This document shows, piece by piece, positions 11,658-18,227 of a stretch of DNA of 64,000 bases. A program made the position numbers and the translations under genes. Origin of the DNA: Rebecca billardiae RCC1528. Its lineage: Eukaryota > Protista > Haptophyta. The DNA lies in the NCBI GenBank assembly GCA_965240325.2, contig OZ251225.1:3906001-3970000 (forward strand), read 5' to 3'. Positions within the stretch are counted from its first letter, which is position 1. Each line of letters begins with the position of its first letter. The notes under the pieces are model-generated. The model did no database searches. It was not told the origin of the DNA and saw only the letters and a program-made list of their open reading frames with translations.

Positions 11658-11994
11658 CACTGCAGGTCGCGATGTGCTCTCGGCCGAGGTCTCCTTCAGC
11701 TTCGGGCGAGGACTCGGGGGCAGCAGGGCAGCCTGCTGCCGATGAGGCCGGGGCCCGCACGCGTGATTCGGTCCGGGGCGCATTCAGACTCGCGCTGGGC
11801 GTGAGGTGCGCCGAGCAGCCGGACGGCGCAAGTCCGGGAGCCGCACCGGCGCAGGTGGGAAGCCGCGAAGGGCGCGGTCCGGACAGTGCGCCTCAAAGTC
11901 CGGACGGCGATGCGAACGTGCGCCTTCAGCAAAGAGCTGCCGCGGACGAGCGCGCTCGCCCACGCCGTCGGCGGCACCGCTCGACGCACGGCGC

Positions 11995-12902
11995 ATGGCG
12001 CCATCGCCGCCGCCACCGCCGAAGCCCGGGCCCGACGCGGAGCGCGAACCGTCCCGCTCGCCGAGCCCGCCTCCGCGCGCCCCAGCCTCCAGCGGCGACC
12101 GCACACCCGCCAAGGACGGCGCGAGCCCTGTCAAGCGCAACCGGAGCGCCAGCCGAAGCGGGAGCCGCGGCCGCAGCCGCAGCCGCAGCCACTCGCCGCC
12201 CCGGCGCGGACGTAGCTTCAGCCGCAGCCGCAGCCGCAGCCGCGGTCGCAGCCGCAGCCGCAGCCGCAGCCGCAGCAGCTCGCGCCCGCGGCGCGGCAGC
12301 CGCAGCCGCAGCTGGAGCCGCAGCCGCAGCGGAAGCTCGAGCCGTCCGCGCGGCGGCCGCTCGTACTCGCGCTCGCGCTCGCGCTCGCCTCGCGGCCGCC
12401 CACCGCCACCGCCACCGCCGCCTCGGCGCGATTCGCGCTGGGGCGGCGGCCCGGGCGGCGGCCCGTCGCCGCCGCGCGGCGGCCGGCGCGACCACTACCG
12501 GCGGCCGGGCAGCGGCGTGGGCGGCGGCCCGGCCGGCGGCGCGGACCTGCCGCCGGACGAGCTGCCCGTCGAGGGGATGTGCTACCAGGCCGACGTCGTC
12601 TCGGCGCGTGAGTTTGGCTGCTTCGTCAAGATCCCCGGCTACGCCAAGCACGGCCTCGTGCACATCTCGCAGATGGCGCAGCACCGGCTCGAGCGCGAGG
12701 AGGTGGGCACCTACGCGCCGATGGGCGCGCGCGTGTGGGTCAAGGTGCTCGGCATCGAGACCTCGGCGACGGGGCCGAAGATCGCGTGCTCGATGAAGGT
12801 GGTCGACCAGGAGACGGGCCGCGACCTCGACCCCGACAACGAGGAGGGCATGCGCCGCGCGTCGGAGCGCGGCGGCGGCGGCGGCTTCGGCGGCGGCGGC
12901 GG

Positions 12903-12933
<31 letters not shown>

Positions 12934-13872
12934 AGCCTCGAGCCGCCCGCCGTGGGCACGGTGCACCGCGGCACGGTGCGCACGGTGACCTCGTTCGGCG
13001 CGTTCGTCGCCGTGCCCGGCCACGCCAAGCAGGGCCTGCTCCACATCTCCGTCATCGCCGACAGGCGCGTGGAGGAGGACGAGCTGCCCTCGCTGCTGCC
13101 CCTCGGCGGCTCCGTGTGGGTCAAGGTGGACCGCACGGACCCGATGACGGGCAAGTTTGGGCTTGCGATGAAGTACGTCGACCAGAGCACGGGCGACGAC
13201 CTCGACCCGGACGGCGTCGCCATGGCCGAGGACGCGGCGCGGCGCGGCGGCGGCGGCGGCGGCGGCGGCGGGCGGTACGGCGGCGGCGCGGAGCCGGGCG
13301 CGATCATGCGTGACGGGCCGGGCGGCGCCTCGCAGCCGACATGGGGCCACCTCGCCGCGGACAACTACAAGCCGCCGCCCGCCGAGGGCGGCGGGCGCGC
13401 GTACGACCTCGTGAGCGACGGCGAGGACGACGCCGGCGCGCCGGGCGGCCGGGCCAAGACGCTCGCAGACGTGTGGCGCGACGGGCCCGCCGCGGAGCAC
13501 CCGCCGCCGCCTGGCGGCGCGGCGGCGGCGGGGCCCGACGCGGCGGAGTCGCTCGCGCGCGCCGAGGCGCTGCTGCGCGAGGCGGCGGGCGGCAAGCGCA
13601 CGCGCGCCGACGACGCCGACGCCGAGGGCGGCGCGAAGAAGCGGCGGCACCGGGACAAGGCGGAGAAGGGCTCGCGCAAGGAGAAGAGGTCGCACCGCGA
13701 GCGTGGCGAGAAGAAGGCCAAGCGCTCGCACGGGGAGAAGGACGGCAGGCCGGACAAGCACAAGCACAGCAAGCACAAGTCGGACAAGCACGACAAGGAC
13801 AAGCGCCGGCACAAGAGCGGCAGCGCCGACAAGAAGGAGTCGAAGAAGGCGCACCGGAAGAGCAGCCGCTGA
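11995..13872 (+). CDS. RS-domain protein with two S1 RNA-binding domains and a Lys-rich tail
   Basis: RSRSRS tract; S1 signatures FGCFVKIPGYAKHGLVHISQM and FGAFVAVPGHAKQGLLHISVI, each followed by MKxVDQxTGxDLDP as in Prp22/ZCCHC17-type S1 domains. Confidence 0.88.
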
Positions 13873-14314: not shown

Positions 14315-17221
14315 ATGTGGAAGCGCGCCGCGGCGGAGGACGACTGGGAGACGGACCCGAGCTTCGAGAACCAGCTCTCAGACGCCGACCGCCTCAAGTT
14401 TGGCAACGCCGAGACCGCCGAGCGCTACCGCGCCGAGCGGACGTCTGGGCTGATCGCGAATCAGCGCATGGACACGATCCGAGCTGACGCGCTCGCGCGC
14501 GACGCGGCGGCGGGCGCGCGCGGCGGCAGGGCGCAGGCGCACGCGCCGACGGGCGCCGGCGGCATGCGCGGCTCGGATGGCGCCGGCGGCTTGACCGCGC
14601 CGCTCGCCGTCTGCGCGCCGCCGATGGCAGCGGCCGAGCCGGCGGCGCCGACGCACGCGCGGCAGGAGGCCTCGTCCGTCACGCCGTTCGCCTCGAGCGG
14701 CGGCGTGCGCGCGCGGCTGCGTGAGCTCGAGTACACGTCGCCCCCGCCGCCGCCGCCGCCCAAGGAGCCCGTGCCCATCGCCACGGCTCCTGCCGAGGTG
14801 CGTGGCGGCGCTGCTGCCGGCGCCGCCGCCGGCGCCGCCGCCGGCGCGCGGCCGAGCGCGGCGGGCGCATCGCCGCAGCCGTCGCAGCCGCTGCTGGCGC
14901 TGCCGCAGTCGGCGTCGCCGCAGCAGGCGTCGCCGCGGCAGCAGTCGCCCGCGAGCGGCGGCAGCGTGCGAGCGCGCCGCTCCACGCTCGAGGAGCGCGC
15001 GCGCCCGGCCGCCGAGCGCAGCCGCAGCAGCACGCTGGCGGTGCCGCCGGCCGCGGGCCTGCGCGCCGCGCGGCGCAGCGCCGAGCCGACGACGGCCGAC
15101 GCGTGCGCGGCGGCGTCGCCCTCGTGGGCGCGCGTGCGCGCGATGCAGTTCGAGCCGAGCCGTCCCGCGCCGCTCGCCTCGCCGCCGCCCGTGCACACCG
15201 GCGCCATTCCTCAGGCCAAGAGCGTGCGCGCGCGCGCGTCTCGCATCGAGGCGGGCGGCGCGCCTCCAGCCGCATCCGTGCTCGCGCGCGCGGCGTGCTT
15301 CGGCGGCGCGTCGACGTCGCGCGGCGGCGCGAGCGGCGTGGCGCCGGGCGCGGGCGCGAGCGCCGCCGCGGCGATCGCCATCTCCTCCCCGCGCACGGTC
15401 AAGTCGCGCGCCAGCAGCTACGAGCAGCAGCAGCAGCCGCCGGCCGAGGGGAGCGCCTCCCCCTGCGCGGACCTGCGCTCGCCCATCTCGGAGCGGCTGG
15501 CGGCCTTCCAGGGGCAGGGGGGCGGCGCGGCGGAGGGGGCGGCGGGGCTCGAGCGCTCGCCCGCGCGCTCGCCCAGCGAGAGCTTCCGGCTGGCGCGCGC
15601 GTCGGCGGACGCGCGCTCGCCGAGCGAGAGCTTTCGGCTGGCGCGCGCGTCGGCGGACGCGGGGTGTGGCTCGCAGGGGCCCCTGCAGTCACCCGCGAGC
15701 GCGCGGCTCCTCACGCCGCCGGCCTCCGCCTCCGCCTCCGCCTCCGCCTCCGCCTCGGCGGGAGCGGCGGGGCTCAAGCACGCGTCGCCGGCCGCGTCGC
15801 CCGCGCGCGCGCTCGCGGGCGCTGGGCCGTTTGTCGGCGCGCGGCCGCGCAGCGGCAGCGCGGGCAGCAGCGCGGGCAGCAGCAGCCGCAGCGCCGGCGG
15901 CGTGGGCGTGGGCGTGGGCGTGGGCGTGGGCGTGTCTCCGGGCGGCGGCAGCGTTGGCGGCGGCCTGGGCGGCGGCGGCGGCCTCGGTGGCGGCAGCCTC
16001 GCGGCGGCCGCCGGCGCGGAGCCGGCCGCGCCCGAGCCCGCGCCCGGCCCGCCCGCGCCCGCGCTGCCGCGCGGGCAGCGCGTGCTGGTGCGCCCATCAC
16101 ACGACCGGCTGCGTGAAGTCGAGTGGAGGCATGCGCGCGTGCTCGCCACCGCACTGCCGCCCGGCGCGGGCGCGGGCGCGGGCGCGGCGGGGGGCGGCGC
16201 CTCGCAGCCCGCCGGCTCCGTGAAGGTGAGCTACGACGGCTGCGAGTCCGACGAGGACGAGTGGCTCAGCCCGGCGCAGCAGCAGAGCCGCGTGCGGCTG
16301 CCAGAGGGCGGGCGGTGCGAGGAGCGGGCGCCCAAGCCCACCGTGGCCGCGGCGCCGCGCCACTTCAGCGCGCCCCCTGAGATGCGCGCGGGTGAGAACG
16401 GCGCGCACTCGGCGCACGGCTCGTGCGCGCCCTCGTCCGCGCGCGCCTCCCGGCCCGCCTCGGCCGTGGGCTCGCACGGCGCCTCGCCCTCGCGCAGCCC
16501 GCTGCCGCCGAGGCCGCCGCCAGCGGCCGCGGCCGCGCCGAGCGGCGGCATGGCGCACGCGCAGGCGGCACCCCCGCTGAGCGCCGCGCCGCCGCCGCAG
16601 CCCGCCGCGGCGCACGCCCCGCCGCAGCCCGCCGCGGCCGTCCGATCGCCCGCGCGCGTCGCTGACCCGCTGGGCGCCGCGGGCGGCGGGCGGCGCGCCG
16701 CGAGCAGCAGCGGCAGCAGCGCGCACGACTCGCCGCAACGCGCCGACCCCTTGGGCGCGAGTGCCGCGCTCAGCCTCTCGCCCGCGCTGACGCCCGCGCC
16801 GCCGCCCGCGCCGCCGCCCGCGCTGCCGAGCGCGCCGCCGCCGCCGCCGCCGCCCGCGGCTGCCGCTGCCACGCCCGCGCCCCTGCCAGCCCCGTCGCTC
16901 GGATCCGCCGGCGGGTGCGCGCACGCTGAGGCGCACGCTGAGCACGCGCTGGCTGGGCAGCTCGCCCCACCGCTGCCCGCTGCCGCCGAGCCCGCCGGCG
17001 CCGCCGTGTCCGCGAGCGCGCGCGGCAGCTCGGCGCGCGCGCCCCCCAAGCCGTCGGGCGGGCTGTTTGACTCCGACGGCGATGACGACGACTTCCTGAG
17101 CGGCAACGCACCTCCGCTCGGCTCGGCGCGCCGTCTGAGCAGCAGCGTGCTCGGCGGTGGCGGCGGCGGCGGCGCGGGCGGCGGCAACCGACGCCCCTCC
17201 GCCGGCCTCTTTGACGACTAG
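14315..17221 (+). CDS. 968-aa low-complexity protein with a cortactin-like DDW N-terminus, a Tudor/Agenet-like domain and C-terminal LF-acidic motifs
   Basis: Single long ORF containing EDDWETDPSFENQLS, GQRVLVR...WRHARVL...VKVSYDGCESDEDEWL, GLFDSDGDDDDF and terminal GLFDD. Confidence 0.75.
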   Translation: MWKRAAAEDDWETDPSFENQLSDADRLKFGNAETAERYRAERTSGLIANQRMDTIRADALARDAAAGARGGRAQAHAPTGAGGMRGSDGAGGLTAPLAVCAPPMAAAEPAAPTHARQEASSVTPFASSGGVRARLRELEYTSPPPPPPPKEPVPIATAPAEVRGGAAAGAAAGAAAGARPSAAGASPQPSQPLLALPQSASPQQASPRQQSPASGGSVRARRSTLEERARPAAERSRSSTLAVPPAAGLRAARRSAEPTTADACAAASPSWARVRAMQFEPSRPAPLASPPPVHTGAIPQAKSVRARASRIEAGGAPPAASVLARAACFGGASTSRGGASGVAPGAGASAAAAIAISSPRTVKSRASSYEQQQQPPAEGSASPCADLRSPISERLAAFQGQGGGAAEGAAGLERSPARSPSESFRLARASADARSPSESFRLARASADAGCGSQGPLQSPASARLLTPPASASASASASASAGAAGLKHASPAASPARALAGAGPFVGARPRSGSAGSSAGSSSRSAGGVGVGVGVGVGVSPGGGSVGGGLGGGGGLGGGSLAAAAGAEPAAPEPAPGPPAPALPRGQRVLVRPSHDRLREVEWRHARVLATALPPGAGAGAGAAGGGASQPAGSVKVSYDGCESDEDEWLSPAQQQSRVRLPEGGRCEERAPKPTVAAAPRHFSAPPEMRAGENGAHSAHGSCAPSSARASRPASAVGSHGASPSRSPLPPRPPPAAAAAPSGGMAHAQAAPPLSAAPPPQPAAAHAPPQPAAAVRSPARVADPLGAAGGGRRAASSSGSSAHDSPQRADPLGASAALSLSPALTPAPPPAPPPALPSAPPPPPPPAAAAATPAPLPAPSLGSAGGCAHAEAHAEHALAGQLAPPLPAAAEPAGAAVSASARGSSARAPPKPSGGLFDSDGDDDDFLSGNAPPLGSARRLSSSVLGGGGGGGAGGGNRRPSAGLFDD

Positions 17222-17981
17222 TCGGAGTAGTGCGCACAGCCGCGCGCTGCGGCCGCGCTCCCAATGCGCACGTGCCGCGTGCTGCGCGCGCGTCTCAGCC
17301 GGTGGGCACCCCGACCCGGCCCGGCCGCGCGCCGGACCTGATGGCACGGCCTTCTCACTTCTGGCCCTCCGCCGGGCCGGAGGCGCAGCGGCACGCCGTC
17401 GGCCATCGTCACTGTGACCAACCCGCGACACGGCGCCGTGCACCACCCCGCCAGCCCAGACGGCCAGACGCCGCCCAGACGGTCCGAAGCGACTAGCGAG
17501 GAGCCCGTGCCCGGGGCTGCCGAGTAGTGCCGACCCGCGCGCGGGCGCGTGGCGGCCGGCGGCGCCTGGCAGCATATTATTGCTGATGATGGCCCGCGGT
17601 GCAGGGCGGAGCGCGCAGCGTGGAGCCCGCACCAGCGGGCCCGAACCACGTTTCAAAAAGATCTTTGATCAAAGAAAAAAGGGACGGGGGACGATTTTCA
17701 GGGCTGGAGGAGACCGAGTTTCGAATTTCGAGACTCCCTTACACTTTACAGGTGCATCCTCGTCGAAAAAGGGCGCGTCCGCCGTCTTGAATAGTGAACA
17801 GAGGAATCAACGAAACCCGCGCCCAAGTGTCAAAGTGTGCGAGGCAGGGTAATTGTGGGTAGACTCTCCTTAATGTAGTGTGACCATAGTAAAATAATAT
17901 GGCCTCGCCGCTGCAAGATTAGCCAAGAACAGACCGTTGACATAATCGTCCAACCAACTCCAATAGTGCGAGAGATTGAAA

Positions 17982-18227
17982 ATTCTGGAAACCCACGAGA
18001 ACAAAGGCACGACTTCACGCTGGGGACCCTTCGACAGACGAATCAGGAGAGCTGCGCCCTCGTGCCTGTGTCTTTAAATCATAGAATTAGCCCGTCGCAG
18101 GCCTTTATTCTGGAAACCCACGAGAACAAAGGCACGACTTCACGCTGGGGACCAGCCCGTCGCGGGCCTTTATTCTGGAAACCCACGAGAACAAAGGCAC
18201 GACTTCACGCTGGGGACCAGCCCGTCG
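17982..18227. repeat. Three copies of a ~65-bp subterminal tandem repeat
   Basis: ttctggaaacccacgagaacaaaggcacgacttcacgctggggacc at about 17982, 18107 and 18173; the first unit is interrupted by a ~60-bp insert. Confidence 0.85.

Follow-up and report, generated by a model that had tools for sequence, protein, structure and literature searches.

A probable divergent cortactin homologue of pavlovophyte algae with a candidate Arp2/3-docking head

An alanine- and proline-rich protein is encoded in a 64,000-nucleotide stretch of the genome of the haptophyte Rebecca billardiae RCC1528 (assembly GCA_965240325.2, contig OZ251225.1, positions 3,906,001 to 3,970,000 of the forward strand; hereafter the window). 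It opens with a short head that resembles the N-terminal acidic region (NtA) of cortactin and HS1. Judged from sequence comparison, this protein and its pavlovophyte orthologues form a family that appears to be a divergent and degenerate cortactin homologue, not a bearer of a mere look-alike motif. Homology of the head with the cortactin NtA is well supported and can be regarded as highly probable. Binding of the head to the Arp2/3 complex is held with less confidence and is considered fairly likely. Taken together, a real gene whose first approximately 90 residues are homologous to the N-terminal part of cortactin/HS1, and whose head would dock on Arp3, is the reading that we consider reasonably probable.

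Residues 1-63 of the window protein were compared by phmmer with 1.84 billion representative proteins. Four proteins (P0001 to P0004) matched from their own first residues, with 58-73% identity and E-values from 4e-17 to 6e-13. These are KAG8464186.1 of Diacronema lutheri, KAJ1617283.1 of Pavlovales sp. CCMP2436 and two JGI proteins. Of the first 63 positions in the alignment of the five N-termini, 27 are invariant (M1 to D63). No other part of the protein is nearly as well conserved as this head, and the long linker that follows can hardly be aligned. The position of the start codon and the order of domains are kept among the orthologues, and the D. lutheri orthologue is a single uninterrupted exon. 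A word-index protein search, in which the window head matched nothing among 544 candidates and residues 1-100 of P0003 matched only P0003 itself, was uninformative because too few exact 5-residue words are in common.

When residues 1-60 of the window protein were compared with all PDB sequences, cortactin alone was returned (8tah_H, E=0.027; 8p94_I, E=1.5), in an alignment spanning DDWETDPxFxNxxS. This single-sequence match is marginal. A profile of 15 haptophyte N-termini, searched against 177,635 PDB sequences, retrieved cortactin with E=4.7e-8 and 1e-6, the next match having E=0.3. A profile of the five pavlovophyte sequences likewise gave cortactin as the sole significant match (E=2-3e-4), colinear over residues 8-90 against 18-94. 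The other proteins with acidic (A) domains in the PDB were matched by neither profile. Within the acidic motif, 8 of 10 residues of the window protein (9-18) are identical to cortactin D20-V29, the tryptophan and four of the five acidic contacts being retained, and D9, D10, W11, T13, D14 and N19 are invariant across all 15 haptophyte sequences. Protein language-model neighbours, which are to be taken as leads, comprised an HS1 cluster plus chytrid clusters for the window head (residues 1-63), and HS1/cortactin-repeat clusters exclusively for residues 1-116 of P0003.

In 8TAH (2.9 Å) only D20-V29 of cortactin is visible; W22 occupies a hydrophobic pocket between subdomains 3 and 4 of Arp3, and D20, D21, E23, D25 and D27 face a ring of basic Arp3 residues (PMC10613254). 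For mammalian Arp3 the same paper lists R230, K240, K244, K251, K254, R275, R329, R333, R334 and R337 as the basic residues of the pocket. In 8P94, which shows the branch junction, the stretch 24-54 of cortactin winds across Arp3, and residues I55-T76 are helical and lie in the cleft at subdomains 1 and 3 (PMC11102864). The pavlovophyte family has an invariant G45-L-I-x-x-Q-x-M-x-x-I-R box that is colinear with this helix region, and AlphaFold2 predicts a helix at residues 52-69 of the window protein (pLDDT of the block about 70-76, a low confidence). The helix is a weak part of the cortactin parallel.

A second shared segment is the start of the actin-binding repeat. The first repeat of cortactin begins with GYGGKFGVE at about residue 84. 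Among the five pavlovophyte sequences, the G[FY]GG[KQ]FG box occurs only in P0002 (GYGGQFGLE) and P0003 (GYGGKFGLE), at residue 80 in both. In the other three (D. lutheri, P0004 and the window) it is eroded, and only 'ARGGR' is left in the window protein where P0003 has ARGYGGKFGLE. Residues 1-110 of P0003 retrieved cortactin as the sole significant PDB match (E=1.3e-14, colinear over 6-104 against 16-107), with E=2.6e-5 for the best single colinear stretch. Residues 64-120 of P0003, from which the acidic motif is excluded, matched cortactin alone (E=5.9e-16 summed), each of the 6.5 cortactin repeats being matched at its start with 9-13 bits. The values of 1.3e-14 and 5.9e-16 sum the matches of a single short box to seven repeats and so overstate the independence of the evidence, which tempers the case for a cortactin homologue. 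Full-length P0002, compared with the PDB, gave only a weak NtA match (E=0.38), since compositional bias swamps the signal. As P0002 and P0003 carry the repeat-start box at the cortactin position, and as this box itself matches only cortactin, the family is read as a divergent cortactin homologue; two separate segments that both match cortactin, in the right order and spacing, point to the one protein, cortactin.

These results refine the original prediction, which was made from the window alone. Its claim that the N-terminus is cortactin-like well beyond the DDW tripeptide was borne out by the profile match and by the orthologues, which conserve DDW, ETDP, F, N, S and the aromatic-Gly pair, the DDW motif being kept in all four of them. 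The exact start MWK did not prove to be a shared feature, as the orthologues begin with MFR or MAFR and only M, an aromatic and a basic residue are common. The proposed architecture without HS1 repeats or an SH3 domain describes the window protein, for which Pfam gives neither, but not the family, since P0002 and P0003 keep one repeat start. Given this repeat start, the protein is better read as a degenerate cortactin homologue than as an unrelated protein carrying the module.

The features of the gene and of related loci are collected in the following table.

Table. Features of the window gene, its upstream neighbour and other head-bearing loci
Feature	Sequence	Positions	Strand	Residues	Basis or remark
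Whole gene, single-exon ATG open reading frame	window	14315..17221	+	968 aa + stop	Open reading frame listing, GC3, orthologues
Conserved N-terminal module, probably homologous to cortactin/HS1 NtA	window	14315..14503	+	1-63	Orthologue conservation, PDB profile matches
DDWETDPSFE, counterpart of cortactin D20-V29 (inverted acidic motif)	window	14339..14368	+	9-18	Alignments, PMC10613254
Predicted helix in invariant GLIAxQxMxxIRxxA box	window	14468..14521	+	52-69	AlphaFold2; colinear with cortactin I55-T76
Eroded site of first HS1/cortactin repeat	window	14522..14590	+	70-92	Alignment; Pfam HS1_rep undetected
Tudor/chromo-barrel-like beta-barrel (SH3-like fold)	window	16052..16339	+	580-675	AlphaFold2, Foldseek, VIA-align
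Acidic patch LFDSDGDDDDFL	window	17063..17098	+	917-928	Alignments with orthologue C-termini
C-terminal GLFDD and stop codon	window	17204..17221	+		Sequence, translation
Upstream neighbour: S1-domain protein, Arg/Ser- and Lys-rich	window	11806..13872	+		Open reading frame listing; start is the mechanical reading-frame start
More distant head, Ala/Glu-rich coiled-coil-like stretch and barrel gene	L003-L007	e.g. L005:3998-5454			43% identity
Head on 1100-residue Ala/Pro-rich repetitive protein	L008, L009	L008:1266-4568			No Pfam domain
Head before Era-type GTPase (MMR_HSR1 + KH_2)	L010, L011, L012	L010:1421-2464; L012:1638-3152
Further head-bearing fimbrins	L013-L015, L017
One internal copy of the head	L016

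GC content across the window is 62-83%, and because DNA of this kind contains long open reading frames (ORFs) in every frame, the codon positions of the frame were examined. The gene has a GC content of 0.79/0.74/0.93 at the first, second and third codon positions (0.67/0.49/0.91 in its first 63 codons), a pattern that matches genuine coding sequence in this genome. In the ORF listing no in-frame start codon stands upstream of its ATG before a stop is reached, and the ORF starts with MWKRAAAEDDWETDPSFENQLSDADRLKFG, exactly as quoted in the original prediction. Immediately upstream and on the same strand, an S1-domain gene is also present in D. lutheri (L001, 6293-7936) and on the P0003 contig (L018, 821-2458), the S1-domain proteins of the three loci being alike in their Lys/Arg-rich C-termini; on the contig of Pavlovales sp. 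CCMP2436 no S1-domain gene was called upstream of the orthologue. The S1-domain neighbour appears to be a synteny anchor, and P0001 to P0004 are treated as orthologues of the window gene, which would be a real single-exon gene in a small pavlovophyte family comprising D. lutheri, Pavlovales sp. CCMP2436 and environmental relatives. On account of the conservation among orthologues, the S1 neighbour and the retrieval of cortactin by a profile made of haptophyte sequences only, the likeness of the head is not attributed to chance. A spurious ORF in DNA of 75-80% GC, with a 7-residue identity picked up by a very large scan, would be in line with the many overlapping ORFs of 200-600 aa around the locus and with the E-value of the single-sequence PDB match, just 0.027. 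However, the excess of GC3 over GC2 in frame, the orthologues in annotated genomes with conserved start, domain order and neighbour, and the profile E-value together leave this explanation next to no probability, and it can be considered effectively refuted.

Two further explanations accept the resemblance and differ on its cause or on its use. Acidic tryptophan motifs might have been selected convergently by the same Arp3 pocket, so that the head would be analogous and not homologous to the NtA. Such motifs did arise in many regulators, among them the A domains of the WASP family, Arpin and Coro7 (PMC10613254, PMC12592476), and between the heads found on haptophyte fimbrins (see below) and the cortactin-like family the likeness is limited to about 35 residues. 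Convergence does not readily account, however, for colinear similarity over about 90 residues, for a separate GYGGKFG(L/V)E box that begins equally far into the protein (residue 80, against about 84 in cortactin) and retrieves only cortactin by itself, or for profiles that miss the other A-domain proteins of the PDB, and we judge it improbable. A conserved haptophyte peptide module for another partner, in a nuclear or other pathway, with common descent and without retained function, is the more serious of the two, although still unlikely. It shares part of its evidence with the points that weigh against a cortactin homologue docking on Arp3. Two of the ten positions of the pocket motif differ (cortactin D27 is S and V29 is E in the window protein). 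G30, N31, E33, T34 and Y38, invariant in the haptophyte sequences, are absent from cortactin, for which reason part of the head may serve another contact. The helix at residues 52-69 has, besides its low confidence, a low hydrophobic moment and is not clearly amphipathic. By Pfam, the window protein has no tandem 37-residue HS1/cortactin repeats and no SH3 domain, and PF02218 (HS1_rep) was found at E up to 1 neither in it nor in the four orthologues, P0002 and P0003 included. The actin-binding repeat has decayed in three of the five orthologues, the sole folded domain of the window protein resembles methyl-lysine (chromatin) reader folds, and the head also precedes an Era-type GTPase that has no obvious link to actin. 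Against another partner, the best conserved residues of the head (D9, D10, W11, T13 and D14) are the counterparts of those that contact Arp3 in 8TAH (PMC10613254), the head is also found on fimbrins, which are bona fide actin bundlers, and the barrel of the window protein has an incomplete aromatic cage. A head that is homologous to the cortactin NtA and would dock on Arp3 is preferred.

The window protein consists of the NtA-like head, a long disordered linker rich in Ala, Pro, Gly and Ser, a Tudor/chromo-barrel-like domain and an acidic tail. It is mostly of low complexity (24% Ala, 13% Pro, 13% Gly and 12% Ser), and Pfam gave no match to it or, apart from the sub-threshold barrel matches described below, to the four orthologues. 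The linker contains a motif in five copies (14705-15511, residues 131-399: VRARLRELE, VRARRSTLE, VRARASRIE, VKSRASSYE and ISERLAAFQ); 0.0055 copies were expected from shuffled sequences, the pattern having been picked after the copies were seen. In the orthologues, related boxes of the type GSVSARVAAL stand in its stead. Just downstream of the gene, a 65-nt direct repeat occurs three times at 17964-18218 in a stretch of lower GC (74-100% identity; start-to-start spacing 125 and 65 nt).

For residues 580-675, AlphaFold2 predicted a small beta-barrel with a mean pLDDT of 75.7. The top Foldseek matches were the chromo-barrel/Tudor-knot domains of TIP60, MRG15, MSL3 and AGDP1 (probability about 0.95-1.0, E >= 0.04), and VIA-align gave Z-scores of 6-7, in the grey zone, to the PHF20 Tudor, MSL3 and MBT domains. 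In the orthologues, Pfam found MBT and SAWADEE matches below threshold. With the known domains of this group (MRG15, MSL3, TIP60 and PHF20) the family shares the predicted fold and a Y-x-G-[YW]-x(4)-DEW signature; it differs from them in lying below Pfam thresholds, in keeping the aromatic cage only partly and in having no second chromatin domain. The domain has 18 invariant columns across the five orthologues. The window copy, which is not at the C-terminus of the protein, carries a species-specific Gly/Ala-rich loop insertion and a reduced aromatic set, its cage, as read from the alignment, being incomplete (SYDGCES). Nearer the C-terminus, the acidic tryptophan ends of the orthologues (EEEWA, DDDDGWE and EDEEWE) align with LFDSDGDDDDFL of the window protein, in which Phe replaces Trp; the window protein itself ends in GLFDD. 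The orthologue tail, an LLxRL element followed by the acidic Trp end, was considered as a WH2/CA-like element, and this candidate was set aside as speculation, as it had no PDB match and no Pfam WH2 domain.

In the mechanism proposed here, the head would serve as an 'inverted acidic domain' that attaches the protein to Arp3. Its W11 would enter the Arp3 pocket, D9, D10, E12 and D14 would lie on its basic rim, and the following segment and helix would lie across activated Arp3. Because in the window species the actin-binding repeat is eroded and no SH3 domain is present, the protein would more likely be an adaptor or competitor at the Arp2/3 complex than a classical stabiliser of branches. As an adaptor, it could bring the ligand of its Tudor/chromo-barrel-like domain, together with the acidic tail, to sites of branched actin; as a competitor, it could occupy the site on Arp3 used by nucleation-promoting factors and Arpin. 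The term 'Arp2/3-activating' used in the original prediction goes further than the comparison allows, since the cortactin NtA acts chiefly by binding and stabilising activated Arp3 and activates only weakly (PMC11102864).

The same head opens other haptophyte proteins. Weaker phmmer matches and a follow-up search showed that it also opens fimbrins from Scyphosphaera apsteinii, Phaeocystis cordata and marine sequences, in which two EF-hands are followed by four CH domains. In the fimbrin P0011, Pfam detected CH domains at E=3.9e-79 in four stretches and an EF-hand pair, and the same domains were found in the L013 ORF. The head-bearing fimbrins (P0011, P0028-P0033, L013-L015 and L017) have the canonical domains of fimbrin/plastin and differ from it in an N-terminal extension of ~140 residues that begins with the head. 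The head of the Scyphosphaera fimbrin, searched on its own against the PDB, gave cortactin as the sole significant match (E=7.5e-5). No description of this extension was found in the searchable literature. The head on fimbrins may represent a direct link between fimbrin and the Arp2/3 complex.

A scan of JGI metagenome contigs gave 15 loci with the head (Table). Exact-sequence look-ups of these environmental ORFs, and of the window protein, matched no entry of the protein collection. Those with a more distant head and a barrel gene (L003-L007) share the barrel box of the window protein (VSLDGYDSENDEW). In L005, the segment coding for YDSENDEWMEGDD is present in two copies about 100 nt from each other, suggestive of an intron or of a local duplication. 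The join of the head to the Era-type GTPase may reflect either a genuine fusion or an assembly chimera, arising repeatedly, with the 5' end of a fimbrin gene. A separate protein, P0006 (785 aa), has about 14 tandem copies of [ND]DVS[NS]AERLKFG followed by a membrane span and leucine-rich repeats; its repeat unit is similar to the latter half of the head (NQLSDADRLKFG) and to a segment of cortactin. As the same head precedes fimbrins and other haptophyte proteins, these data suggest that it may be a portable Arp2/3-docking tag in haptophytes. More specifically, we tentatively propose, as a possibility that falls somewhat short of probable, that haptophytes reuse a head of 35-65 residues as such a tag on the cortactin homologue, fimbrins, the Era-type GTPase, the Ala/Pro-rich protein and the head-plus-barrel protein.

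In comparison with known systems, the family is closest in layout to cortactin and HS1, the class II nucleation-promoting factors. It shares with them an N-terminal module, an inverted acidic DDWETDPxFxN motif, an aromatic-Gly pair about 10 residues further on and, less securely, a predicted helix downstream, as well as, in P0002 and P0003, a repeat start of the form GYGG(K/Q)FG(L/V)E, equally distant from the N-terminus, with a Pro-rich region after it. It differs from them in several respects: HS1 and cortactin have 3.5-6.5 repeats, whereas one partial repeat is present in the best orthologues and none is detectable in the window protein; the window protein has no SH3 domain and carries its Tudor/chromo-barrel-like domain in the C-terminal third; a Trp-containing acidic tail closes the orthologues of the window protein; Met1 and DDW are separated by a much shorter spacer (8 residues in the window protein, 19 in cortactin); and the host is a haptophyte, not a holozoan. 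The A domains of the WASP family and Arpin are likewise acidic, contain a single essential Trp and occupy the same pocket of Arp3 (PMC10613254), and the EEEW-type end of the orthologues is similar to them in composition and position. These domains, however, are C-terminal, bind with the opposite polarity and are not matched by the haptophyte and pavlovophyte profiles. Of the features of class I factors, Pfam found no WH2 domain or C helix in the window protein or its orthologues, and the orthologue tail had no PDB match. Yeast Abp1 is another class II ligand of Arp2/3, in which acidic DDW-type motifs are placed on a protein with a different actin-binding module. Unlike the window protein, it has an ADF-H domain, a C-terminal SH3 domain and internal acidic motifs, and the likeness is one of description only.

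The claim that cortactin is described from animals and close relatives agrees with the literature that could be searched, in which three comparative studies place its origin in Metazoa (PMC554100) or in Holozoa, where it would have been added to an ancient core of Arp2/3 and WASP (PMC3748353, PMC4824007). The sampling of PMC3748353 includes fungi of chytrid grade, and haptophytes are absent from it. On Arp2/3 in haptophytes the literature searches gave indirect statements only: a WASP homologue is present in E. huxleyi, itself a haptophyte, and the lineages named as without the complex do not include this group (PMC3298513). A single paper mentioned both cortactin and haptophytes, in unrelated places. 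Among the ESM Atlas proteins near the window head are short chytrid-fungus proteins of 51 and 84 aa, which lie beside the HS1 cluster and hint at cortactin-like heads in early-branching fungi too. That the module is 'older', as originally proposed, is not established: it may be ancient with losses or may have reached haptophytes by horizontal transfer.

A haptophyte family with the NtA, the helix position and the remnant of a repeat in common with cortactin would shift the origin of the module or show its transfer. If the heads bind Arp3, the N-terminal half of cortactin (NtA plus repeat) would not be a holozoan invention, and would either predate the split between haptophytes and opisthokonts or have crossed between them. 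The haptophyte heads offer natural sequence variation for the interface between the NtA and Arp3, and D. lutheri is available in culture, its genome having been sequenced (GCA_019448385.1). The head-bearing fimbrins would tie the nucleation of branches directly to the bundling of filaments, a connection not described before, and a whole lineage would, provided that its heads bind Arp3, wire bundlers and other effectors directly to branch junctions.

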